Numbered from the whole stretch's first letter, positions 9,726-63,980 are shown. The stretch is 63,980 nucleotides of DNA, filler included, from Hausera hauseri (GCA_046269625.1; 11 parts of 11 records of this genome joined end to end with filler, not necessarily neighbours in it); one strand, 5' to 3'. The notes: generated from the sequence alone by a model not told the origin. A program made the numbers and translations.

Positions 9726-12700
9726 GTGAAAATTGTTTTTCTTCCTATTCCACAGAGACAAAGACACACTTGTGGCATCTGCGATAGAGTCTTCACACTT
9801 GTTCATAACCTTAGACGTCATAATGACTCTGCACTGGGAAATAAAAACATACATGCAATATGCGCGGCAGAATATTTACCAGAAGTGTCAGCCTGTTGGT
9901 CCACGTACAAGGGGATCATTGTTACTCGCTAAAGAGGCCTGCTCCCTCCTATTTCAAGCGACACTGGCTACTGCTCCTTCCCAAGATAAAATACTGAGAT
10001 CTGCTCCTTCGAATAAGGGGGCTGCGCTAACTGGAAAAAAAACATAAACTGAACGAGGACCGGGTTGGTCCTTCCAAGAAAAAACAAAAAAAAAGCATCG
10101 GAATATGATTCGTTAATTGATTTACCCAATGATGTGAGAAACAGATATGATGACAATGAGGCATCTATAAAAACACACAGTATCATTGGCAAATACATTT
10201 CCACATATACTTATTTCCACAGACTAGACACTGAACACCGTTTGGACTGGAATTGTCTTTTAGACAACATATTTAATTGTCAGACACGTGGTTTAAAATT
10301 AACTACAGCCATCATTTCATTCGTAGGCACATCGAGACAGGGGATCTTAGATTTTATCATGCATTATATCAAACAATGCAGCAGTCTTAGAAACACCTAA
10401 ACATATCAAGAAACGGGCAGACTTTGTAGATTTCATTAAACATTTAGAGCCACAAGATCCAGTTAGCTTTGCATTACACAACAGGTCTAACACCAAATAC
10501 ACAATAGAAGCCATTCCTCCATATAATTTTTATATTTACCATTTAAAAGGATACCCGATTGGATGCACTCTAGACGAAATAACTGAACTCTTTACAAACA
10601 ACAAATCCATTTTTACACTAAAACACGACTCGTATACCACACTATATACAGATAATCTATGCTTCATTTGTTCTTTGGCAGTTTTTAGGGGTAGTGCCAT
10701 TAAAAACTTCAGTAAGTCGACACAACTCCTCAAGCATTGGTATGACTACCAGAGTCTCCAGCTCCTGGATAGTTTCCCCCGGAATTAGTTGAATAGATAT
10801 TCCCGATTTAGAAGAGTGTTTCCAGATAAATAAATATATATTTGAATTTGATGAGTACTTATACTTAAACTCGGAGGTAGCGGCGAATATACTCTGTTTA
10901 TTAGCGTATAGGAACCATTTTATGTATATTTCAAATATTGACCAAGCAGTACATGCTTTTTCGTGTAGCAAATGCAGCAAGCTTTTGCCCGTCCGCTGTA
11001 ATTTTATGAGACTCGAAAAGACATGTAATGGAGGCAACTCTGTCGATGTCTTTAAGGGTGGTGTTTACAGCCCACTCGAGACTATTTGTGAAGAAATCGA
11101 CCTGCTTGGAATATCAGTTGACACTAAGTTTATTTACTCATATCGAGCAAGATTTGATTTCAGACATATTCCCAAAAGACAAAGTTGGCTCCTGAGGCCA
11201 GTTCGACGACATTTGTCGCAAAGCACGTACCGTTATCGTGCTCTAGAGCTTCTAATGTGCATGGAATGACGGATTCCGTTTGCTTCGATTAAAACGGGAA
11301 TCATCGAGCCTTGGTTAATGACATAGTCGCCAATCTCCAAGAAATTTCGGAGATGGCTTATAGACTTTTAAAAAATCATTTGAGGACGTGCTTAACGTCT
11401 TGGGCAAGATAGAAGACAGAGCCCTCCTAGGTACGCTGATGCGTTTTTTGTACCAGCTCCCGGTCATAGGCATTAACTCGAGAAAACTTGACATTAACGT
11501 AATTAAACCATATCTCATAAGTGCACTCGCCACTCAAGGCGTGAATGGGGAAGCCGCTCAAGGAGGCAGCAATGGAGAAGAAAGTTTCCAAGAGAAGAAC
11601 CGAGCTGGAGCTGCCCAGGCTTCCGCCAAGCCTCATAATTTTATAGTTAAGTGTAACAATAACTTTATGTGCCTTTCTACACTAAAGTTGAAATTTTTAG
11701 ATATTTGTAATTTTCTGGCGCCGGGTTTTAGCTATAGCAGGTATTTAGCTGCGTGCAAGATAGAGGAAAGAAAGGGATATTTTTGTTATGAATATATTGA
11801 TGATTTAGCTAAATTAAATGAAACTAGTCTACCTCCCCACTCAGTGTTTTTCTTGTCCCTTAAGAATAAAATTTCAGATTCCAAATACTCATTTTTTCAG
11901 CACGCTTGGGGAGGAAACCACATGAAAACCCTTTAAGATTTTCACATTTGGTACAACTATAAGGATTAGTGCCCTTTTCAGATGCGTTAGAAAAACGATT
12001 GAATTTTATTCTAAGTTAGGATTCATATTTTCCGCAACGCGATTTCGGTCCCTGTCGTAACATTAAAGTATCTTTTTTAAAAATAAACCCACGGATGCAG
12101 CTTTTTATTTATATTAAAAGCGCGGGAAAGAAATCCATAAAGTGATTAGAGATAATATAGTGGGCAGGCCTCAAACGTATTCCATAGGTACCACGAAAAG
12201 GATGAGACGTGTATTAGGGGGAATACGTTAGTTCTGGAGATTAAAGGGTACGATGCTAAAGGCTATATTTATGGGCTTTAACGCAAGACATACCGACAGA
12301 TTTTGCTATATTTAGGAAGAGGGAAGACGGGTTTAAAGATGCATAAAGTTAATTATTATACAAGACAGTGTCGCCAGTGGTTAGCGTGGGTAGAACACAA
12401 GAATAAAATTACTTTAAAAACTGAATATAACGGTAGGGAAATGGCTTTAGGTTCCTTGTATAAAAGAGTAGATGGGTGGGATAAAAATTCGCGGAGTGCA
12501 TATCAATTTCATGGTTGTTATTTTCACGGACATTCGAATTGTCCCACCACCCGCTGTAAGGTGATTAATCCCGTCAGTAAGATACTGTTGGACAAGTTGT
12601 ATAAGAAACCTCTGACCATTCACGAGTGAATAGCTAAATATGCTAAAGTCGTGATGATGTGGGAATGTGAGAGGAAAGCTCTGAAAAAGTCAAATACATC

Positions 12701-13979
12701 AATAAAAGCTTTTCTGAGCACCATACCTTTTGTGGCGCGATCCACCTTCTAACGGCTACCGACAAAGACGAGAATTCTGAAAGCTGTAAAGGCCAAAAAG
12801 TGGCTTGGTCGAGTGTGAATTACACGTTCCCGAAAAATTGAAGGAGCATTTTTTTGAAATGACTCCAGTATTTAAAATCGTCGAAGTCTCTGGAGCCGAC
12901 ATAGGGGACTTTATGCGTAAATAGGCAATACAGAACAAACTCTTGACGAGTCCCCGTCCTACGCTGGTAAACAGTTACAAAGACGAAAAGATTCTTCTGA
13001 CCTCCTCATTATAAAGGTGGTACATGAACCACGGTCCACAAGTCACAAATGTGTACCGGGTCATCGAGTTTGGTGACAGCGCCGCAAATGCTCGGCGCCA
13101 GGGAGATACGCAATTTCGAATGAGACGCTAAAATTCTTGGGGAATGCTTATGGTACAATTCTTACCAATATAGCCAAACACTCTGATGTGTCTTATTGTA
13201 AGGGTGATGACACTGCCGATGCGGTTAATAGCCCCCTATTTAAAAAGATAACAGAAATTAGTAAGAATCTTTTTGAAGTACAAATGCATAAGGAAAAAAT
13301 AGTTTGGAATCTCCCGTTGCAGATAGGTTTTTTCGTATATCAATATGCAAAGTTAAGAATGTTATAATATTATTATGCTTTTATAGATAAATATGTAGAT
13401 AGGTCCGATTTTCAGCTATGTGAAATGGATACAGATAGTTTGTATTTGGCCCTTAGTAAGTGTGACCTAGCCGATGCAGTCAGAACCACAAATTAGAGAA
13501 GAATTTTGTAGCGTGTACGACATGTGGTTTCCTGCGGAAGTCTGTACCGCGCATAGGTCCATATTTGTTGGGTAAGGCGGGGGTAGATTGTCTGGCCTGT
13601 AGAAATAGGAAAGCATTCGATAATATAACTCCGGCCCTCTTCAAATTAAAATATGCAGGCGAAGGAATGATATTCCCTTGTAGTAAAACCTACCATTGCT
13701 TTGGGAGTTACAACAAAACCATTACAAAAGGCATAACAAAACAACACAGTTACAACAAAACCAGTATAAAAGGCATAACAAAACAACACAACACACTAGA
13801 CAAAGACAAATTCTTATCAGTTTTAGAGAAACAACAACCACAGGCAGGGACAAACACGGGGTTCAAACTACACAAATCCGCAGTATACACTTAAACACAA
13901 CTTAGGAACTCATTATCTTACTCTTATATCAAAAGACAGGTCCAGTCCGAAAAATTCACACCAAAACCACTCGACATTT

Positions 13980-13981
<2 letters not shown>
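9726..13981 (+). pseudogene. Polinton protein-primed DNA polymerase B with an N-terminal C2H2 finger and an inserted VSR-like nuclease; heavily decayed
   Basis: HTCGICDRVF..NLRRH; NSRKLDINVIK; KFLDICNFLAPGFSY; KGYFCYEY; RVDGWD..YQFHGCYFHGH; LGNAYG; QIGFFVYQYAKLRML; EMDTDSLY; CSKTYHC. Confidence 0.9.

Positions 13982-14017
<36 letters not shown>
13982..14017. repeat. (AC)n microsatellite
   Basis: Perfect dinucleotide run. Confidence 0.97.
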
Positions 14018-14019
<2 letters not shown>

Positions 14020-14589
14020 TTAAAATTGCTGTAAACGTTGTAAAATACCTGTTATGTCACTGTAAATACAAATATCTGTGAATAAAAGATGTATATAAAA
14101 ATATGTGAATAATGTGTTAAACTACGCCCTTTATGAAAACTATTTTTCTGATTGTGAATAATGTAAATACAAATATGATAATGAGACTATATATTATTCT
14201 TTGTTAATATATTGGTGACGAAGTAAATGATGAAAATATACATCGCCTTTTGTTTTTATTTGTACGTCTTTTTTAGTGTTAATTCTCTAAACACCTACTC
14301 TTGGAAAACATCTGGCTGCCTTTAACAGGAAAACGGGTGGGCACTATTATCACGCCACCCGAGAAAAAAGGGGAACCACTGAACACGCCAACAAAACACG
14401 TTTTGGAGCAAAACAAGTCTGGACACGTTTTAGAAATAGAGTAAGTCTGGACATGTTTGGGAAAATGACCCTGGGGAACCCTGTGCAGACGACTTCAATA
14501 ATTTGGTTGACCCAGCAGTGGGCATATCTGCCGGCGACCTGGCGGATGATCCTGCAACCCGGTGCACTGATGCCATCAATTACATAAAT

Positions 14590-15050
14590 TATACAAAGAA
14601 TTGTCTCCCTCTTATCAAACTGGAGCAATGACGACATTGCTCCAGCCTCTATTAGTGTCTCCATTTTTTCCTACGTGAATTCTCTGTTCCTTACTAAAAA
14701 TTATGAAAAGTTGTCTCCCCTTACCCGACTCCATCTTGCTCCACACTTGCTCCAGGTTTTTTCCTATGCTCCACTTACAAAAAAAAATTCCAAACAGCTG
14801 TCTCCCCCTTACCCGACTGGAGCAATGACGTCATTGTTCCAGTCTTCCTAATAAAAGATTTCGCAAGAATTACATAACAAAAACATACAATTATGCAATT
14901 TCTTACATAATCTTACGTCATCTTACATAATCGGATATGGCGTCATTGCCGGATATGACGTCATTGCTCCAGCCTTGCTCCAGGTTTTTCCTTAAATCCA
15001 CCGATTTAGCTCCAGAAATGATACCATGATTTTCACTCTATACTACTACT
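14590..15050 (+). repeat. Probable Polinton right terminal repeat region ending in (ACT)3
   Basis: Internal direct repeats (tgtctcccc-ttacccgact, ctggagcaatgacg-cattgctccagc, ttgctccaggttttt) ending at tactactact; many Polintons end in AGTAGT...ACTACT; partner TIR not in window. Confidence 0.6.
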
Positions 15051-15208
15051 AACGGATGTCTATTTAGCATTCTTGCCGCCATTCAAAATTATCTATTCGG
15101 CTCCATTGAAGCTACGCAGTCACTATTTCCTTTGAGAAATTTAGACGCCACGAGTACAGAGGTAAACTATTTCTTAATTTAGGTAATATAATTAAATAAT
15201 TTTAAATC

Positions 15209-15545
15209 CTGGTGAGAGCATTGGAAATTTGTTCTTCCGTTCGCCTCGAGTGCTAAAGGTACGGGGTTCGATTCCTGGTGGAAGCACTTGGGATTTTTTC
15301 TCCTGGATCTTCTAGTAATAAATTTCCCCGATCTCTGGGTAGTGAGATCGGACGTCCGTGTACATTGTCGTGCACGTAAAAAAATCCGTCGGCAGTTGAA
15401 AATCGAAAGAGAGTATTCTGTTAACGGCCGCTGTCCTGGAAAAATTCTAGGAAAAATCTACCCCAGGCAGAAATGTAAACAGACAACACTGCCTATTTCT
15501 CAACCCTGGTTAAATAAAGATCTTATCTTATCTTATCTTATCTAT
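15209..15545 (+). mobile_element. Second SINE family (tRNA-like B box, (TCTTA)n tail)
   Basis: ggttcgattcc at 15265-15275; aataaa followed by tcttatcttatcttatcttatct. Confidence 0.65.
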
Positions 15546-15751
15546 TAATCAATAATCGTAAGAACAAAACGAATCGCTGGAGGTGCTCAAGATTCATCCA
15601 TGTCACTGGATGGAATATACGAAATCAAGTGTTATGTATTCNNNNNNNNNNNNNNNNNNNNNNNNNNNNNNNNNNNNNNNNNNNNTTAATTAATTAANNN
15701 NNNNNNNNNNNNNNNNNNNNNNNNNNNNNNNNNNNNNNNNNTAAATATATT

Positions 15752-16480
15752 TTGGTATTTATTGATTATTTCACCAGATGGGTGGTGGCTTTACCAATGC
15801 CTGATATAAGGGCTGACACAATTGCTGAAAGATTTGTGGAAAATATAGTATTCAATTACGGAGCTCCAAGAATTCTGACAGGGACTGTAATGCAGTCCAT
15901 ATATGATATATTGAAAATATTAAAGTTACGGTCAACGCCCGCACATCCAAAGAATAATGGAATGGTTGAAAGGTATATTGGAGACCTAAAAGGTAAATTA
16001 CAAACAGTAGTAAATACTAGGCAGGATGACTGGGACGAATACATCAATGCATGTGTTTTCGTCAATCGGACATCAGTCCATGAGGCGACTAAAGAAACAC
16101 CCTTTTATATAATGTATTTGCGAGATGCAAGACTACCAATCGATTTAGATTTCAACGTAAAAACAATTTCACACTTAATGGAAATAGAAGACTATAAACA
16201 AGTAATGCAAGAACACCTCCAGTTGGCATACAAAATGATTGGTGATAACCAGAAAGATTATAAATTAAAATATAAGAAATACTATGACCAAAAGACGAAG
16301 CAGCCTAGAATCAAGATAGGCGACCAGGTGATGTTGCATTCTCCAACAATTAAAAAGGGTAAAACGTCTAAATTAGACAGACCATAAAAAGGACCATATG
16401 AGGTAGAAAAAATAGACCTACCGAATATTTGCCTAAAGAAAAATAATACTTCCGTAAAAGTACATATTAACAGATGTAAG
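15752..16480 (+). pseudogene. Gypsy integrase core + GPY/F C-terminus
   Basis: FIDYFTRW, YGAPRIL, HPKNNGMVER, ETPFYIMYLRD, KLDRP*KGPY..VHINRCK. Confidence 0.92.
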
Positions 16481-16579
16481 CCTGCTGCTAAGGAGAGTAA
16501 GTTAAGAGAAGGTAAAAAAGAGTTAGTAAACAGCATCAGTGAGAAGGAAATCGAAAAGGACTCAACGAATAAACTGCCT

Positions 16580-17965
16580 ATAAAGAAGATATTATTACTA
16601 GGCATCATTCTATTACTTCCCATAGTAGTAGGACAAATGTCGGATCAAAAAGTTCAAAAAGCCAAAATACGACATGCTACAGCCATAAACGAGGATCTAT
16701 GGTTAAAAATCTTAAAGTATCACATAACATATTCCATGCAAGGTCAAAAATGCATTACCTGGTATACTACGAGACAAATACCTGGTGATTATATCATAGA
16801 GATACAAATAACCCCAGTCAACGGTCACGAAAGAAACTCTGATGAGAGATATAATAGTTGCACCCTACGTTCAGTGACTAATAAAACGCAATGTCCAATA
16901 GACACTTCAGGGACACATAGGGTATACCTAACGCTTATAAAAAAGAAAGGAGGTTATTATTATAGTTTACATACTAAATTTTACAGGTATATACGAGTTC
17001 CCAATAGACAGGGAATGAATGAAACACTGCTTGATGAAATAATACTCGCTCAGAAAAAAATAAGATCAATAGAATTTAAAAGTGGACGAAGTTGTCTCGA
17101 AATAAGAAGTATGATAGAATTAGAATATATTCGATGGATAACGATATCCATAAAAGAAATAGGAGGCAAACAAAGATTATTGAAATGTGAATTAACCGAT
17201 GAACAGCAACAAGTTTGCTGCAACGTAACAAGAGGTAAAATATGCGAAGTAAAATATACTTTGTCACGAAAGGAACACGGAAAGCTCAAGAATAGAAGAC
17301 AGAAAAGGTCCGACAATGTTTATACGATATAACAATCAAAATGAGTATGATGATATACGAAGAAGAATCACGGTACCACCTGTGCAAGTCTCGCCTGATA
17401 CCAAGGAGATGACTATTCTAATTAAACCATATGCTTCTTATTACCGCCAAAAACGTTCTATCTGGGATAACGTAACTATTATAGCACTCCCACGGCACTA
17501 ATCATCTCTCTTAGACCAGATCTCGACTTCATAAAAATTAAATTTGTCTGTAAAAGACAAGACACCACAGTAGCAAAAGGAATAATAACTCCTGATGATC
17601 TGATAGTGCTGTGTGCGGCTTTAGAGACTAATACGAAATATACAATTATGTTACAATTATTAGACGTTAACGATAAAATAACCTCTACAAAAGTAATGTC
17701 TCCAATCACAAAAGGTACTAGAATCGAATCACCATACAGATTAAATACAATCATGAATAAGACAACTAAAAAGCCATTACGAGCAGGATATAAGTATTCC
17801 CGCCTAGAAATAATCATAATAGGTTCAATAACCCCTGTGGTCTTAATAATAATATTGTTAATAGTGAGTAAAATCTTATATTGGCGATACAAACGAAGAA
17901 GAAGCTGGGTCAGAATTGATATGCGAAATCTAGCGAATCCGTTAGATACGGACAACCCCAGCTGA
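16580..17965 (+). pseudogene. Type I membrane protein with signal peptide, FN3-like repeats, two RQKR furin-type sites and TM; starts in frame with integrase
   Basis: KKILLLGIILLLPIVVG|Q in the integrase frame; CCNVTRGKICEVKY; CAALETNTKYTIML; TM IIIIGSITPVVLIIILLIVSKILYW then RYKRRR; internal frameshifts near 17320-17500. Confidence 0.75.
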
Positions 17966-58171: not shown

Positions 58172-58197
58172 GTCTGAAGCTGACCAAGACTTTCTAA
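58172..58197 (+). CDS. Last codons of a porin paralog (..LKLTKTF*), cut by contig start
   Basis: Near-identical to the C-terminus LKLTKAF* of the porin at 61055 and followed by the same 3' UTR. Confidence 0.75.
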
Positions 58198-58237
58198 TTT
58201 GACGCTGGGGTAACCCAGCAGAATTGATGAAGAAAGT

Positions 58238-58270
58238 AAAAACCCACCGTGGCAACACGGTGGGTTTTTT
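58238..58270 (+). terminator. Rho-independent terminator of the left porin
   Basis: aaaacccaccgtg-gcaa-cacggtgggtttttt. Confidence 0.9.
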
Positions 58271-58317
58271 GCATTCAAGCTCCTATACTGGCACCCACAA
58301 CATCGGGTGCATGCTTT

Positions 58318-59814
58318 ATGAATCAGCAGCAAAAGACTTCGCGTTATTGTCGTCGTGTGGGGTTTGGCTGTTCGCCTATGCAGGCCTTGCCGCAAGACCC
58401 TGTGGCCTGGGCGCAGGGGCAGGTGGAGCGGGTGCCGCCTATTGACCTGATGGAGCGCGATGGCAGTCGCACCCCGGGCACAGAAAAACTGCCATTGCTC
58501 TCGAAGATGGACGCGGTCATGACCGCCTTCCATCAACACCAGGAAACCGAGCGGGCTTCGTTTGCCAAATCCAGGGAGATGGGCAACCGCGAGTACGAGC
58601 AATGGCGTCGCCGCGAGATGCACCCCTACTGGCAGCTGGAACATTGGAAAGAGGTCCAGGCCCGCACCAGCACCGCGCGTTTTGGACAACAACCCGTATT
58701 CGAAAAACTCTGGCACTTCTGGGCCAACCATTTCATGGTTGCTCCGGGCAACCAGAAAAACGACACCTTGGTGGGGCCTTACCAGCGCATGCTGCGCACC
58801 CACATGACGGGGCAGTTTCGCGATTTGTTGTGGAACGCCGTCACCCACCCAGGCATGCTGGTGTACCTGGACAACAACCGCAACACCGGGCCCAACTCGA
58901 TTGCCGCCAAGCGCGGCTGGACCAAGGACAGCGTCAACGAAAATCTGGGCCGCGAGTTGCTGGAGCTGTTTACCCTTTCGCCCGCCGCAGCTTACACCCA
59001 GAAGGATGTGGAAGAAACCACCCTCATCCTGACCGGTTGGCGCGACAAAAAGCCCGACAAGTGGCACAAGCCCGGCGAGCCCTTGGGCACGTTTTTTGAC
59101 TTCAACCACCACGAGGCAGGTAGCCAAACTGTTTTGGGCAAGAAATACTCCGCCTTTTTTCGGCCAGACGGCAAGCTGCAAGACCTGGTGGACGATTTGG
59201 CGGTTCACCCCGCAACCGCAAAGCACATGGCACACAAGATGTGCGTGTACTTCATGGACGACACGCCCCCCGCCGCTGCTGTGGCTGCGGTGGAACAAGC
59301 CTTCGTGGCCAGCAAGGGGCACTTGCCCTCAGTGCACAAAGCCTTGCTGGAGCAGTGCTGGGTGCACCTGGAGGGCACACGTAAACTGGGTTCGCCCGAG
59401 GCGTGGTTGCTGCAAACCCTGGTCTATGGCGACGCGGACTTGCCAGCGACCATTCCGTGGGAGCCCGATACCCGGGGCATGAAAACGCATCACCTTCTGG
59501 GTGACTTGGGGCAAGAGCTGCCGCGTTGCCCGCAGCCCAACGGCTGGTTCATCAAGTCCAGCGACTGGATCTCCAAAGAAACGCTGGATCGCCGCGCCCG
59601 CGTCGCGCAACACTTTGCGCGCCAGTGGGCACGCGATATCGGGGCTGACCCCGCCAAACGACTCGCTGTGCGCGAGCGTATCCAGACCATTCTGGCGCGC
59701 GATTTTTCGCCCGGCCAGCCAGACCACCAGGTGGTGCAAGCGGCCTGGTCAGAACGGGACCTGATCAAGACCCTGGTGTTGATGCACGTCTCCCCCTCTT
59801 TGTTGTGGAGCTGA
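58318..59814 (+). CDS. DUF1800 domain protein
   Basis: EKLWHFWANHFMV, AVTHPGMLVYLDN, NENLGRELLELFTL, YTQKDV, LTGW, HPATA, LGQ..PQPNGW; start assigned to MNQQ downstream of the terminator. Confidence 0.9.
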   Translation: MNQQQKTSRYCRRVGFGCSPMQALPQDPVAWAQGQVERVPPIDLMERDGSRTPGTEKLPLLSKMDAVMTAFHQHQETERASFAKSREMGNREYEQWRRREMHPYWQLEHWKEVQARTSTARFGQQPVFEKLWHFWANHFMVAPGNQKNDTLVGPYQRMLRTHMTGQFRDLLWNAVTHPGMLVYLDNNRNTGPNSIAAKRGWTKDSVNENLGRELLELFTLSPAAAYTQKDVEETTLILTGWRDKKPDKWHKPGEPLGTFFDFNHHEAGSQTVLGKKYSAFFRPDGKLQDLVDDLAVHPATAKHMAHKMCVYFMDDTPPAAAVAAVEQAFVASKGHLPSVHKALLEQCWVHLEGTRKLGSPEAWLLQTLVYGDADLPATIPWEPDTRGMKTHHLLGDLGQELPRCPQPNGWFIKSSDWISKETLDRRARVAQHFARQWARDIGADPAKRLAVRERIQTILARDFSPGQPDHQVVQAAWSERDLIKTLVLMHVSPSLLWS

Positions 59815-59815
59815 C

Positions 59816-60973
59816 ATGAAGCGCAGACACTTTTTGCAAGGCTGCCTGGGTGGCGTGGGTTTAAGCCTGGCGGGGGCGCCCGCTGCTTGGGCGCAACAGG
59901 CGCCCAACACTCGCCTGTTGCTGGTGTTGCTGCGCGGCGGTATGGATGGCTTGTGTGCTGCCCCACCCTTGCAAGACAGCGACTACACCCGCATCCGGCC
60001 CAACACCGCTGTCAGCAACGCGCTGCCCTTGGCACAAGGGTTTGGCTTGCACCCTGCCTTGGCTGGTGTGCACGGTCTGTGGCAAACGGGGCAATTGGCG
60101 GTGGTGCACAACACCGGCTTCAAGTACACCGGCCGCTCGCACTTCGAGGGGCAAGACATCATGCAATCGGGTGTGCTCAAAGCCTACGCCTCGGGCACTG
60201 GCTGGGTGGGCCGCGCCATGGAGGCGGCCCAAAGCAGCGCTGGCGTGTCGATTTCCATACCCATGCCTTTGATCCTGCGCGGCAACCCCAATGCCACCAC
60301 ACAGTTTCCGAACTGGATGCCGCCGCTCAACGCCAGCACGACGGACCAGTTGCAGCAACTGTGGCAAAACGATGCTGCGCTGGCCCCTTATGCCAAGCCG
60401 ATTCAACTGGCCAACCAGCAACAAATGCAGGCTGGGCAGGCAGACTTCAAGGAAGCACGCACCTTGCAAGCCCTGGCGCGGCTGGCCGGGCAGGAAATGG
60501 CCTTGGACGAGGGCCACCGCGTGGGCTTGCTGGATTCGCGCCCCGGCTTTGACACCCACGCCAGCCAGGGCGCCAATACGGGCAGCCACGCAGAACGGCT
60601 CAAGGAATTGGACCAAGCCATCGTCCAATTCAAGCAAGCCGTGGGTGCCCAGTGGAAAAACACCCTGGTGCTCACCGTGACGGAGTTTGGCCGCACCGTG
60701 GCCGAAAACGGCACCACCGGCACCGACCACGGCGTGGGCTCTTGTTGCTTCCTGGCAGGAGGCTTGCTCACCGAGTCCAAGGTGTACGCCGATTGGCGGG
60801 GCCTGAAAGAAAAAGACCTGTTCGAAGCGCGCGACCTGCCCATCACCATTGATGTGGCCGCCGTTTATGCCCTGGCCCTGGAGCGCGTGTTTGGCTTGAG
60901 CGCAAAACACATCCAGAGCAAAGTGCTGGAGCACGAGCCCAGCGTGCACTTGAAGGGCTTGTTGGGGGTGTAA
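59816..60973 (+). CDS. DUF1501 domain protein with Tat signal peptide
   Basis: MKRRHFL; LLRGGMDGL; FGLHPAL; RSHFEGQD; GFDTHASQ; TEFGRTVAENGTTGTDHG; canonical partner of DUF1800. Confidence 0.92.
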   Translation: MKRRHFLQGCLGGVGLSLAGAPAAWAQQAPNTRLLLVLLRGGMDGLCAAPPLQDSDYTRIRPNTAVSNALPLAQGFGLHPALAGVHGLWQTGQLAVVHNTGFKYTGRSHFEGQDIMQSGVLKAYASGTGWVGRAMEAAQSSAGVSISIPMPLILRGNPNATTQFPNWMPPLNASTTDQLQQLWQNDAALAPYAKPIQLANQQQMQAGQADFKEARTLQALARLAGQEMALDEGHRVGLLDSRPGFDTHASQGANTGSHAERLKELDQAIVQFKQAVGAQWKNTLVLTVTEFGRTVAENGTTGTDHGVGSCCFLAGGLLTESKVYADWRGLKEKDLFEARDLPITIDVAAVYALALERVFGLSAKHIQSKVLEHEPSVHLKGLLGV

Positions 60974-60981
60974 CAGAGATT

Positions 60982-61013
60982 AAAAAACCCACCGTGTTGC
61001 CACGGTGGGTTTT
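60982..61013. terminator. Bidirectional terminator between DUF1501 and the right porin
   Basis: aaaaaacccaccgtg-ttgc-cacggtgggtttt, inverted copy of 58238-58270. Confidence 0.9.
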
Positions 61014-61054
61014 GACTTTCTTCTTCATCCGAGCTGGGTTACCCCAGCGTCAAA

Positions 61055-61886
61055 TTAGAAAGCCTTGGTCAGCTTCAGGCGGCTGGTGTTGCCACTGGTT
61101 GTGTTACCAACGCTGAGGTTGATGCTGGTGGTTTTGCTCAGACTGTACACAGCGGCAACAGCGGTGCCATTAGCAGCACCTTTCTTGCCATAGTGCAGAC
61201 CCAGAGTCACGGCACCCATAGGAGCGGTCACAACCACTTCAGTTTGCTTGTTGGTGTCGCTACCAGCTTGGAGCTTCATAACGCCCAGGTCATAAGCGGC
61301 GGTGTAGCGGCTACGCTTGTCGCTGGGACGATAGCTGTAGGAGGTGGACAGAGGACCGTTTGCATAGGCCGCGGCGTAAGTAGTACCGCCAGCATCCTTG
61401 AGCAAGTTAGATGTGCTGAGACCGGCAAATGCTGTGCCTGTGTTGCCACCAGTCAGCTCGGAGCCACTGACAGAAAGTGTCACGCCTTTGAACAAAGATG
61501 GCAGGGTGTAGCCCCAGGCTTGAATGGTGACATCGCCACCCAGAGCACCGTTGATGTCGGTGGGCAGGCTCTCCAGACCGCCGAGCATGAGCTGGCCAGA
61601 GTTGACCTGCTTGTATTCAACCTTACCGAAGCCACCTTCCAGTGCCATCAGGATGTTTTCAGAAGAGGTAGAGGTTGTATTGCGAGCATCGCTCACCAGA
61701 TCGAAAGAGCCAGAAACCTTCAGACCGCCACCCAGATCTTCAACCACAGCAAAGTTGACTTTGGCATCGGTTTTGTCGATTTTGGTGCCAGCGCTGGTGT
61801 TGTTGAAACCAACACCGATAGCGCCAGACAGGGTCACAGAAGATTGAGCGAAGGCGGTACCAGCAACTGCCAATGTAGCCAGAGCA
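61055..61886 (-). CDS. Betaproteobacterial general (trimeric) porin, intact except that the signal peptide lacks its Met/basic N-region (possible silent cassette)
   Basis: ALATLAVAGTAFA|QSSVTLSG, VEDLGGGLK, GGFG, YSLSKTT, terminal F; upstream of ALATL the sequence turns abruptly AT-rich and unlike porin leaders. Confidence 0.85.
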
Positions 61887-61999
61887 TCTACGTTATTTAT
61901 CAAAAGTAAACTAATATGTATTACAATAACAGATACGCAGATCATTCCAAACATTATGGTTTTTTATTTTGCGCATATGACATACATTGGACTTCAAAT

Positions 62000-63301
62000 A
62001 TGCATCCGCCGATAGAAATGACGCTTCGACCCATTCGAGCTGATCTAGGCACCAGCCTGGAAGATTTCTTGGCCAACCCCGTGCAGGTGGTGGGCCAGGC
62101 GGGCTCGCGTGCAGTGGCCGTCATGAGCAACGATCGAGTGGTGTTTTATGTGCATCCAGTCGATTTTGTCGATGCCATTGCTTCAAACGATTCTGTAGGT
62201 GACGTCATCTCTCTGGAGCGTGCCGTTTTGCCGGTTGAACGGTCCCACAGCCGTTCTGAAAGTTACCGAGACCGTTTTGAGTGGTTGGCTGGAGAACTTG
62301 TCAATGTAGAAAGCCAGCGCGCCAAACGCGGCGAGCTCAGCAAGGCCAGCCTGGGCATTTTGCGCAATCGTCTGGACGCGCATGTGTTGCCGCATTTCCG
62401 CGATGTTCGCCCCAGCCAGATCAAGCCGCGGGATCTGGATGCGTTTGTGCAGCGCCTGTCGGCGCAGAACATGTCCACCACCACCATTTCGCAGTACCTG
62501 GTGATTGTGCGCAAGTTGCTCAAGCTGGCGCGGCGCCAGGAGTTGATTCGCGATTTGCCCGAGATGCCGCTGGTCAAGGTCACGAGCCGCCCGCGCGCGA
62601 TGCTGAACGTGGACGAGTACCGTCGCGTGGTGCAGGCGGCTTTGCGTTTGTCGCGCACGGGCAGTGCAGCGCCAGAGGTCAAGGCGACCGAGGGCGAGCG
62701 TGAGCGTTTTTGGGTGCAGCCGCGCAATCGCACGCTGCCGCCGGACATGGCGTGGGCGATTCGCTTCATGGTCAACAGTTTTGTGCGCCCGGGCGATGTG
62801 CGCCAGTTGCGCCACAAGCATGTGCAGGTGGTTCGCAGCGAGAGCCTTTACTTGCGCCTGACGCTGCCCGAGACCAAGCGTCACGACACGCCCATGGTCA
62901 CGTTGCGCCCGGCGGTGCAGGTGTACGAGCGTTTGCTGGCGCAGGCGAAGGCGCAGGGCCTGGGCGGGCCGGAGGACTATGTGTTTTTACCGGCCGAGCA
63001 GGACCGCAATTACGCGCTGGCGGTGTTGGGCTTCTGGTTCAAGTGGGTCTTGCGCGAGGCGGGCGTGGCCACGGATGACACCTTTGGCCGCCCGCGCACG
63101 CTGTACTGTTTGCGGCACACGTCCATCATGTTCCGCTTGTTGTACGGCCAGGGCATCGACATGCTGACCTTGGCGCGCAATGCCCGCACCTCGGTGCAGA
63201 TGATCGAGAAGTTTTACGCCAGCGCGCTGAGCGGCGAGATGAACGTGGCCCTGCTGCAAAGCAAAAGAACTTTGACAAATTTTGCCAAGATGGTATCGTG
63301 A
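62000..63301 (+). CDS. Tyrosine recombinase/integrase with an N-terminal Phd/YafN(StbD)-like domain
   Basis: Core-binding region (HVLPHF..IKPRDLDAFVQRL..STTTISQYL); FVRPGD, ETK, LYCLRHT, ARNARTSVQMIEKFY; start could be 62000 or 62018. Confidence 0.88.
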   Translation: MHPPIEMTLRPIRADLGTSLEDFLANPVQVVGQAGSRAVAVMSNDRVVFYVHPVDFVDAIASNDSVGDVISLERAVLPVERSHSRSESYRDRFEWLAGELVNVESQRAKRGELSKASLGILRNRLDAHVLPHFRDVRPSQIKPRDLDAFVQRLSAQNMSTTTISQYLVIVRKLLKLARRQELIRDLPEMPLVKVTSRPRAMLNVDEYRRVVQAALRLSRTGSAAPEVKATEGERERFWVQPRNRTLPPDMAWAIRFMVNSFVRPGDVRQLRHKHVQVVRSESLYLRLTLPETKRHDTPMVTLRPAVQVYERLLAQAKAQGLGGPEDYVFLPAEQDRNYALAVLGFWFKWVLREAGVATDDTFGRPRTLYCLRHTSIMFRLLYGQGIDMLTLARNARTSVQMIEKFYASALSGEMNVALLQSKRTLTNFAKMVS

Positions 63302-63546
63302 CCTCCATGTCCACCATGAACATTTCTTTGCCTGAACCTCTCAAGCGCTTTGTGGATGAGCAGGTCAGCGATCGAGGTTATGGCACCAGCAGTGAGTATG
63401 TGCGCGAGCTCATCCGCAAAGACCAGGATCGACAACATTTGCGTGGCTTGTTGCTGGCGGGGGCTGCGTCCCCAAGGGTGGCCGAGCCGGACGCCTCCTA
63501 CTTTTCTGCTTTGCGCCGCAAGGTCAAGTCGGCTTCAAGTCAATGA
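63298..63546 (+). CDS. parD: ParD-like ribbon-helix-helix antitoxin
   Basis: MSTMNISLPEPLKRFVDEQV..GYGTSSEYVRELIRKDQDR..LRGLLLAGAAS; alternative start ATG 63307. Confidence 0.88.
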   Translation: MTSMSTMNISLPEPLKRFVDEQVSDRGYGTSSEYVRELIRKDQDRQHLRGLLLAGAASPRVAEPDASYFSALRRKVKSASSQ

Positions 63547-63713
63547 CTGTAGCCAAGGTGCACTTGCGGGCTTTGGCGCGGCAAGACGTAGAACAGGCGG
63601 TCGAGTTTTATATTCTCGAGCAGGCGCCGCAATCAGCCTTGGACTTGATCGACGAGGTCGAGCGCGCGTTCAAGCGCGCCCTGCGCGATGCTCATCTCCT
63701 CTCGCGACTGTAG
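63543..63713 (+). pseudogene. parE: ParE/RelE-family toxin, N-terminal half only
   Basis: ATGA overlap with parD; MTVAKVHLRALARQDVEQAVEFYILEQAPQSALDLIDEVERAF, then unrelated sequence and a stop. Confidence 0.75.
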
Positions 63714-63800
63714 TAGGCGTAAGTAGGTGCTCGCGACGTCGAGGAGCACCTGGCGTGCAATCCGTTCCTGAAGGCGCGGGTCGACGCGATGCTCCGCTCC
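63675..63800 (-). other. Unrelated very GC-rich fragment, possibly an outer-membrane efflux (TolC-like) helix
   Basis: RQVLLDVASTYLRLLQSREEMSIAQ pattern; abrupt GC rise in the middle of parE. Confidence 0.4.
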
Positions 63801-63980
63801 CGGCCCGTGCCGACCGAGGTGAGGCCGGCCTCCGACGCCTGGTGGGTGCCTCCGCCGGGACTGGCGTGGCGGGCTCGCGCGGCGCTGCCGGCCGTGATGG
63901 CCGCCCGCGGTGTGAAGGTGGGCGAGCGCTTCCAGATCCACCTCCAGCGCCCGCCCGACGATCGCGACCGGGTCCTGCTG

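Follow-up and report, generated by a model that had tools for sequence, protein, structure and literature searches.

A headless porin beside a tyrosine recombinase in Hausera hauseri: candidate silent cassette of a site-specific porin switch

The described systems closest to the one considered here are those of Mycoplasma: vsa of M. pulmonis (HvsR), vpma of M. agalactiae (Xer1) and vsp of M. bovis (Mbr). In these systems, a tyrosine recombinase lies by a family of surface-protein genes with one promoter-bearing expression site and silent copies, and short sites at the 5' ends mediate the inversion that places a silent copy behind the expression site; the vsa site lies in the 5' coding region. 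Knock-out of Xer1 locks the phase of vpma in M. agalactiae (PMC2268961). Here we describe a locus at 58172-63980 of a stretch of DNA from Hausera hauseri (GCA_046269625.1; 63,980 nucleotides, the whole of which is called the window), in which a porin gene lacking its 5' end, the right porin, lies beside a divergent tyrosine recombinase gene, and for which a comparable inversion is proposed.

The next closest systems are the SusC/SusD shufflons of Bacteroides, in which inversion exchanges the promoter and 5' part of outer-membrane channel genes between paralogues, and a tyrosine recombinase lies close by. In the R64 shufflon (Rci) and in Moraxella tfpQ/tfpI (Piv), site-specific inversion connects one expressed, constant 5' part with alternative variable 3' parts; of the two enzymes, Rci belongs to the tyrosine recombinases and Piv does not. 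The promoterless silent surface-protein genes of Campylobacter fetus (sap) are placed behind a single promoter by an inversion that depends on RecA and on a conserved 5' stretch of ~600 bp. No outer-membrane proteins are more abundant than the general porins, which often serve as phage receptors, and to our knowledge those of well-studied bacteria vary by mutation, regulation or slipped-strand phase variation, not by programmed DNA rearrangement. A survey of programmed inversions counts the SusC/SusD class among the known targets of gene-altering inversions and lists the shufflon PilV (PMC9881135); porins are not mentioned in its main text. A full-text literature search, which left most subscription journals outside its reach, found no description of a porin inversion system, and earlier work is possible.

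The original prediction, made from the sequence of this locus, reported two convergent porins, an inverted repeat of about 100 bp, a headless right porin and a divergent recombinase, and all of these were found in place (Table 1). The right porin is best explained as a silent cassette in a system that switches porins by site-specific recombination. A shufflon-like or expression-site switch run by a dedicated, resident tyrosine recombinase is the reading that we favour and regard as fairly probable. In this mechanism, the recombinase would act on a 25-bp site with 9-bp inverted arms around TGCTCTG, and one genomic site would carry the promoter, the 5' untranslated region (UTR) and the first six codons (MKKSLI/V), together called the head. 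Recombination between the headed site and an inverted headless site would bring a different porin body behind the single head, and the previous body would then be parked headless beside the recombinase gene. Cutting of the site by the recombinase, the occurrence and frequency of inversion, and its purpose, which may be escape from phages or grazers that use the porin, are predictions drawn from sequence comparison.

The headless porin, its recombination site and headed partners

The right porin is a general porin that matches PF13609 over positions 2-308 of 310, with an open frame of normal length (277 codons) and the C-terminus ..LKLTKAF. Its signal peptide begins mid-way (..VD^ALATLAVAGTAFA^QSS, with ^ marking boundaries) and is kept only from the hydrophobic core onward; the break lies at ..VD^ALATL, 114 bp from the recombinase ATG, and no MKK-type start is present. 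In its present form, the gene therefore offers no normal start for translation, and a promoter search of 60900-62150 gave nothing sigma-70-like. In a protein search, the nearest database relative was 76% identical and carried an MKKTLI head, and the exact right-porin body was not found in a switched state.

Two other routes of expression were considered. Translation from the ATG at 61954 is unlikely: it is the only in-frame ATG, its leader is implausible and is not conserved in the related loci L001, L052 or L053, and there is no promoter-like site. A fimS-like invertible promoter was rejected for the A+T-rich spacer that separates the site from the recombinase, since no inverted repeats were found to flank the spacer and the spacer is not conserved even in close relatives.

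For comparison, 80 metagenome loci were fetched by the recombinase alone (alignment A1, 13 members) from 515 confirmed relatives, and the porins in them were located by iterated profile search. Of these loci, 70 extend far enough upstream to be judged, and in 57 of them the recombinase gene has a headless porin as its immediate upstream neighbour, on the opposite strand; the other loci mostly represent a shorter recombinase subfamily with porins downstream. A site-specific recombinase encoded at the locus, as in programmed inversion, is therefore found in these 57 loci and in the window, and the neighbouring recombinase pointed out in the original prediction belongs to a family dedicated to this porin arrangement. 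At 64 junctions, the two of L001 and those of second recombinase modules included, a frame without an MKK start breaks at x^ALA(A/T)LA.

The junctions are invariant at the DNA level. Over 69 distinct headless sites, GCTCTGGCT is 96-100% invariant, three third-codon positions included, unlike third codon positions deeper in the signal peptide, which vary freely. The non-coding side of the junctions keeps ..TGTAGCT, its best positions reaching 87-93%. Read on the sense strand of the porin, the family consensus site is CAATGTAGC^TGCTCTG^GCTACATTG, with 9-bp inverted arms around an asymmetric 7-bp spacer, which is the usual build of a tyrosine-recombinase core, and it falls in the Ala-Leu-Ala codons of the porin signal peptides. 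Many loci, such as L055, hold a perfect consensus site. The site of the window reads TAACGTAGA^TGCTCTG^GCTACATTG; its spacer and right arm are perfect and its left arm agrees with the consensus at 6 of 9 positions. A single exact copy of TGCTCTGGCT is present in the piece, and it is at this site that the homology between loci ends. A recombination site inside the signal-peptide codons had been postulated beforehand, and the invariant core lies exactly at the break.

Headed partners occur in the same loci as 19 distinct complete porins, in which the leader ..CCTTGGAGAAACTTGCA, the codons ATG AAA AAA TCy CTr rTy and GCTCTGGCT stand in this order. The conserved leader ends in ..TTGGAGAAACTTGCA ATG, and the headed-site pattern is …ATGAAAAA.TC.CT.AT.^GCTCTGGCT, with weaker, attB-like arms. 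In 16 of the 17 loci that hold both a head and a headless porin, the two are inverted relative to each other, 1.6-6.4 kb apart. Inverted short sites, one copy of which has a promoter and start, are thus present in the family, and the window piece holds the headless site only. In many loci the paired sites are identical over no more than 9-15 bp; RecA-type recombination would need more, and a site-specific event is therefore favoured over a homologous one. As exchange within the spacer predicts, hybrid sites are found among headed and headless sites alike: 42% of the recombinase-adjacent (headless) sites bear the right arm typical of headed sites (GCTGCC), and 16% of the headed sites have A at position 9, giving a GCTACA-type arm.

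Three layouts were seen. In the first, the headed and the headless porin are convergent and the recombinase lies outside (L052, L054, L061, L062, L071); this is the arrangement drawn in the original prediction, with promoter and head on one convergent porin and the headless porin and recombinase opposite. In the second, the order is headless porin, recombinase, headed porin, so that recombinase and head both lie within the invertible segment (L098, L103-L105, L108, L112, L114). The third has two divergent bodies around a short head-bearing segment (L118, L129). Whichever the layout, a flip of the segment between the two cores would hand the head over to the other body; the body that had it would remain, headless, next to the 5' end of the recombinase gene. 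This predicted state is exactly the one seen in all loci. A multi-cassette version with three porin bodies and one head (headless +, headed -, headless +) is present in L115 at 11627-16980.

The silent bodies are maintained, as had been supposed for the headless porin. Among headless bodies complete at the 3' end, 61 of 63 are intact (median 361 codons, C-terminal Phe), and the ratio of nonsynonymous to synonymous substitution rates (dN/dS) among headless orthologues is 0.06-0.19. Such conservation would not be expected of a gene that is never expressed; the headless copies are not junk and are under purifying selection.

The recombinase, its chromosomal place and the double-recombinase form

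The window recombinase matches SAM-like core-binding domains and, weakly, PF00589 (E 0.04). All 13 members of alignment A1 match SAM-like domains (best E 9e-6), and in a profile search of PDB the core-binding domain, the sole domain matched, hit 2kd1 (E 1.6e-5). The alignment has invariant R263, K293, R372-H373 and Y406 in the motifs FVRPGD, ETKRH, LRHT and KFY, and the ESM Atlas neighbours are tyrosine recombinases. More than 2000 relatives were found in the protein collection at E < 1e-5, most of them ~60% identical and either unnamed or called 'integrase'. The N-terminus (62000-62200, residues 1-60) resembles the Phd/YefM antitoxin fold, with a PF02604 match in 5 of the 13 members (best E 8e-4). 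This extra domain, unusual for a tyrosine recombinase, may bind arm-type or operator DNA.

The promoter and accessory sites of the recombinase are probably located in the A+T-rich spacer, whose sequence differs even among close relatives. The recombinase start codon is overlapped by a short inverted repeat, GCATAT..19 nt..ATATGC (61973-61978 / 61998-62003), and other palindromes of 6-7 bp (TAGATTG/CAATCTA, ACAGAC/GTCTGT) lie ~50-60 nt from the core in L054, L062 and L089-L096. These palindromes may be operators or accessory sites, with chance being possible at such short lengths.

The recombinase is intact in frame and has an 81% identical counterpart at the same place in L001; across L001, L052 and L120, it is 81-99% conserved. 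In ~25 loci it lies between a porin and tctA, with TctA 86-100% and the recombinase 55-99% identical. This fixed porin-recombinase-tctA order over a wide recombinase divergence therefore argues for vertical inheritance at one chromosomal place. In L001, the right recombinase stands directly before tctA-tctB, stop codon abutting stop codon, which leaves no room for cargo, and the ParDE genes found in the window, L052 and L120 are an optional insert between recombinase and tctA. No recombinase relatives were found in 2.9 million viral contigs. The comparison points to a resident, non-mobile recombinase.

These observations bear on ordinary att disruption, the alternative that the original prediction itself had named, in which an island integrase targeting a porin 5' end split the porin and left the head at the far end of the island. 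Integrative elements of this kind likewise show a tyrosine recombinase by a truncated gene and an A+T-rich junction; together with the downstream ParDE addiction module, these are typical of island ends, and in L123 head and headless copies stand in direct orientation with the recombinase between them. We nevertheless consider such an island very improbable, and a prophage or island integrase was rejected. The place of the recombinase before tctA is fixed, L001 holds no cargo, viral relatives are lacking among the contigs searched, and the split genes are intact and under selection. Moreover, the partner sites are almost always inverted, whereas integration yields direct repeats. An integron was also rejected: there was no significant match to an integron-integrase model (NF040815, E 0.0016, 18 bits against a cut-off of 220 bits), the cassettes form no tandem direct arrays, and the recombination site is at the 5' end, inside the coding sequence.

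A reference-genome scan with the DUF1501 protein gave 51 loci. Porins and recombinases surround DUF1800-DUF1501 in L001 only; in the other 50, which are more distant relatives, the pair occurs without flanking porins or recombinases, and it is therefore a passenger outside the system. The synteny porin-DUF1800-DUF1501-porin-recombinase, proposed beforehand as a check on the original prediction, is present in L001 and L053 and absent from those 50 genomes.

L001 is a river metagenome-assembled genome with 93% nucleotide identity to the window; the match covers 58192-61012 and again the recombinase, and the DUF1800 protein is 96% identical. Its right porin breaks at the same point (..YVD^ALATL..) and is followed by a different A+T-rich spacer. 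The porin bodies of the window and L001 are unrelated, the right porins being 37% identical over the first 129 residues. The left porin of L001 has no usable start; the sequence upstream resembles a porin 5' UTR with its ATG two bases out of frame, and a second, divergent recombinase, 46% identical to the first, flanks it. In L053, which has the same DUF1800-DUF1501 layout, the left porin is likewise without a usable start beside a second recombinase, and this second type always adjoins a DUF6641 gene. A degenerate porin 5' UTR and head follow the second recombinase at L001 7250-7400, L053 1270-1345 and L119 3660-3720, with a stop codon before the core in L053 and L119. Homology between L001 and L053 stops ~75 nt before the core, not at the core. 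P0123, a 68% relative of the right porin, ends in LKLTKTF as the left porin of the window does, and carries the leader typical of the second recombinase module.

Two further pairs of loci bear traces of exchange. L055 and L096 have a porin and flank that are 99% identical and recombinase modules that differ (76% over the gene, with unrelated spacers), and the identity stops at the core. L062, with a head at left, and L119, with a second recombinase and degenerate head at left, are 88-90% similar in the passenger region and right recombinase; one chromosomal locus therefore exists in two alternative states, with a single head or with two recombinases.

By this comparison, the genome studied here would be of the double type, its two silent bodies converging on the passengers DUF1800-DUF1501, with a further recombinase module most likely at the left; the expressing head would probably lie elsewhere, and neither cassette of the window locus is likely to be expressed at present. 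The original prediction had a flip of the whole cassette change the expressed porin, with the left porin as the expressed partner. In view of the left porins of L001 and L053, which have no usable start and adjoin a second, different recombinase, a flip of the single cassette is unlikely to switch a porin on, and the part given to the left porin is unproven and probably wrong.

The inverted repeat was considered as a crossover site as well. Its two 97-nt arms are 92% complementary and bracket DUF1800-DUF1501; each holds the last porin codons, a small hairpin and a strong terminator, so that the repeat is the common 3' end and terminator of two convergent porins. The left arm is 93% conserved in L001, where the repeat begins only at the stop codon. 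A role as crossover site was rejected on these grounds, and the repeat is at most an anchor for homologous replacement of porin bodies.

Evidence for and against switching

Parts of the stretch occur in 24 public runs, all as assembled contigs, and four of these runs were compared with the window. Run X19 shows no differences from the window in most pieces and is probably its source or the same strain. In X19 and X20, a contig departs from the right porin at 61856 and runs on, in reverse complement, into GATT^GCTCTGGCT^GCCCTGGCATCCGTTAG; this is a left flank of the head type, joined to a different middle part of the signal peptide. These samples therefore contain a headed porin that has the mature 5' end of the right porin. 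This head-type junction had no match among the fetched loci. Three of the four runs leave the middle of the right porin (61276-61663) uncovered, as would be expected if bodies vary among strains. One X19 contig follows DUF1501 and the terminator to 61005 and then turns into 146 nt of unrelated sequence (CGTCACTGAGTTCGCG..); the X19 sample thus contains a co-occurring strain or arrangement without the right porin at 61005.

Several observations weigh against the switch that we favour. The assembled contigs of the four runs contain no inversion joints. Among 81 loci, no pair at 85-88% identity or more shows opposite orientations, and a search for bodies present both headed and headless, at >=80% identity over most of their length, gave none. 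From the core to 61856, the head-type contig of X19 and X20 does not agree with the window, and the headed porin it represents is more likely a paralogue than a switched state of the right-porin body. Headed sites favour GCTGCC and headless sites GCTACA, and exchange is therefore not frequent and unbiased. Neither porin of L001, L053 or L119 has a working start, and the nearest 8-10 kb hold no head, so that switching there would need long-range inversions, which are costlier. Only in L123 (187-7742) are the headed and the headless copy in direct orientation; they have 48 identical bases in common, and recombination between them would not invert a segment but cut out the recombinase and one body as a circle. 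The 'headless' copy of L123 has an in-frame ATG of its own (MQNVHV..). The headed site of L052 (330-350) reads GCCCTGGCG in place of GCTCTGGCT, with the spacer changed to GCCCTG, and this mismatch in the presumed 7-nt overlap may lock the switch. As for the enzyme, the PF00589 matches of the 13 aligned members are weak and below the Pfam cut-off (best E 0.003, range 0.003-0.04), and its AlphaFold model, built from 13 sequences, is poor (predicted local distance difference test score, pLDDT, 52).

The missing heads raise the question of whether the family is or was a switch of which only a locked or decaying remnant, without effect on porin expression, is left here. Besides the start-less porin pairs of L001, L053 and L119, the degenerate heads of the left modules (an out-of-frame ATG in L001, stop codons in L053 and L119), the imperfect left arm of the window site and the lack of a promoter-like site in the spacer agree with such a relic. 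Several features of the window speak against decay: the right-porin frame is intact to its C-terminal Phe, the recombinase frame is intact and conserved among relatives, and the 7-nt spacer and right arm are perfect. With silent bodies elsewhere at the low dN/dS given above and a headed paralogue in the same samples, we consider a relic quite unlikely.

Replacement of porin bodies is seen as well. Between a conserved signal-peptide 5' end and a conserved 3' UTR and terminator, in genomes with 93% identical flanks, the bodies at window 61055-61888 and L001 11247-12392, and at window 58172-58197 and L001 7390-8385, are unrelated, which probably reflects homologous recombination. L104 and L105 are alike in everything except the silent body, and signal segments and mature bodies form mosaics, the headed signal of L052 being that of the headless porin of L001 on unrelated bodies. 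Homologous replacement of bodies therefore appears to go on as well. Could replacement account for the whole picture, with bodies captured or exchanged between cells or loci, in integron-like fashion or by homologous recombination at the conserved signal-peptide and 3' UTR segments, giving strain-to-strain diversity and not phase variation? The branching of the X19 and X20 contigs at 61856, the start of the conserved AFAQSSVTL codons, would fit this, as would the conserved 3' UTR and terminator and the direct orientation in L123. However, homologous exchange needs no dedicated recombinase, the related loci show no integron-like tandem direct cassette arrays, and the invariant palindromic core, the near-universal inverted geometry and a selected silent copy beside the recombinase would be left unexplained. 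Replacement in place of reversible switching is thus unlikely, and the two may well coexist.

One comparison is suggestive of inversion itself. A 440-bp flank, 87% identical between L111 (1335-1771) and L112 (7494-7931), lies beside the silent porin in L111 and, inverted relative to the recombinase, beside the headed porin in L112. This pattern would fit inversion of a segment made up of recombinase and head; the adjoining bodies are not orthologous. The trio L108/L111/L112 was not counted as proof of inversion, the picture being a mosaic one of bodies that are not orthologous.

At the right end of the piece, the final 308 bases stand where the last two thirds of ParE should be. Up to 63672, L052 is 96.6% identical to the window; beyond it, L052 and contigs from X20 and X21 read on through ParE (..FTHLAQFPATG), and in L052 tctA comes next. 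None of the four runs compared covers 63798-63980. The tail is probably an assembly chimera.

Table 1. Parts of the locus at 58172-63980 (positions counted from the first base of the window)
Feature	Position	Strand	Basis or remark
Left porin 3' end (last 7 codons and stop, ..LKLTKTF)	58174-58197	+	Remainder beyond contig edge; stop 58195-58197
Inverted repeat, left arm: porin 3' codons, 3' UTR hairpin, bidirectional terminator	58174-58270		Repeat search
3' UTR hairpin GCTGGG-GTAA-CCCAGC	58204-58219		Left arm
Strong bidirectional terminator	58238-58269		Left arm
DUF1800 gene, passenger between porins	58318-59814	+	Pfam PF08811, E 1.3e-80
DUF1501 gene, passenger between porins	59816-60973	+	Pfam PF07394, E 6.8e-28
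Inverted repeat, right arm: terminator, 3' UTR, last codons of right porin	60982-61078		Terminator 60984-61013; repeat search
Right porin body, headless	61055-61888	-	Porin_4, E 4e-18; no start codon of its own
Proposed recombination site, 9-7-9	61871-61895	-	Junction alignment of 88 sites and position frequencies
A+T-rich spacer, 111 bp, site to recombinase start	61889-61999		~38% G+C
Tyrosine recombinase, porin-linked family	62000-63301	+	Phd/YefM-like N-terminus, SAM-like core-binding domain, divergent catalytic domain (..LRHT.., ..KFY)
ParD antitoxin gene	63298-63546	+	NCBIfam TIGR02606, E 2.9e-13; 96% identical in L052, L120
ParE toxin gene, 5' part	63543-63672	+	True continuation replaced in contig
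Foreign tail	63673-63980		78% G+C; probably assembly chimera, outside system

Wider significance and comparison with known systems

Beyond the window, the loci may represent a widespread, so far undescribed porin shufflon of freshwater Burkholderiales, in which a vertically inherited recombinase family, with more than 2000 protein clusters and more than 500 metagenome loci, swaps whole barrels behind a six-codon head; some genomes, the present one among them, would have several silent cassettes with two different recombinase modules and possibly long-distance shuffling. We give this broader claim about an even chance. If true, porins would be a new target class for gene-altering inversions, and the recombinases a new family with a short, clearly defined site. 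Such a system could explain the hypervariable porin loci of very abundant freshwater bacteria and would bear on phage-host dynamics in lakes and rivers; abundant planktonic bacteria would have a programmed change of a major phage or grazer receptor. Loci of this kind may also be present in cultured relatives among the Comamonadaceae/Burkholderiaceae.

The likeness to the Mycoplasma systems in overall plan is set against several differences. The present host is a Gram-negative betaproteobacterium, and the switched protein would be a general porin (PF13609), not a lipoprotein. The recombinase is of another family, with a Phd/YefM-like N-terminus and a poor PF00589 match, and is known from sequence alone. 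The proposed site is a 9-7-9 palindrome in Ala-Leu-Ala codons, and the loci come in several layouts, some with two recombinase modules and passengers. With respect to the SusC/SusD shufflons, the phylum, the recombinases (Tsr family) and the repeats differ, and the proteins there are 22-strand TonB-dependent transporters as opposed to 16-strand porins.

In the R64 and Moraxella systems, the C-terminal part of a pilin is swapped and the larger part stays as it is, whereas here only six codons and the promoter would be constant and the whole mature protein would be exchanged. Integrative elements that disrupt a gene at an att site differ from the present loci, which have no cargo, a fixed place, inverted partner sites and no relatives among the viral contigs searched. 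Finally, in contrast to sap of C. fetus, with its long conserved 5' sequence, many of the loci described here share only 9-15 bp between their sites and have a dedicated recombinase beside them.

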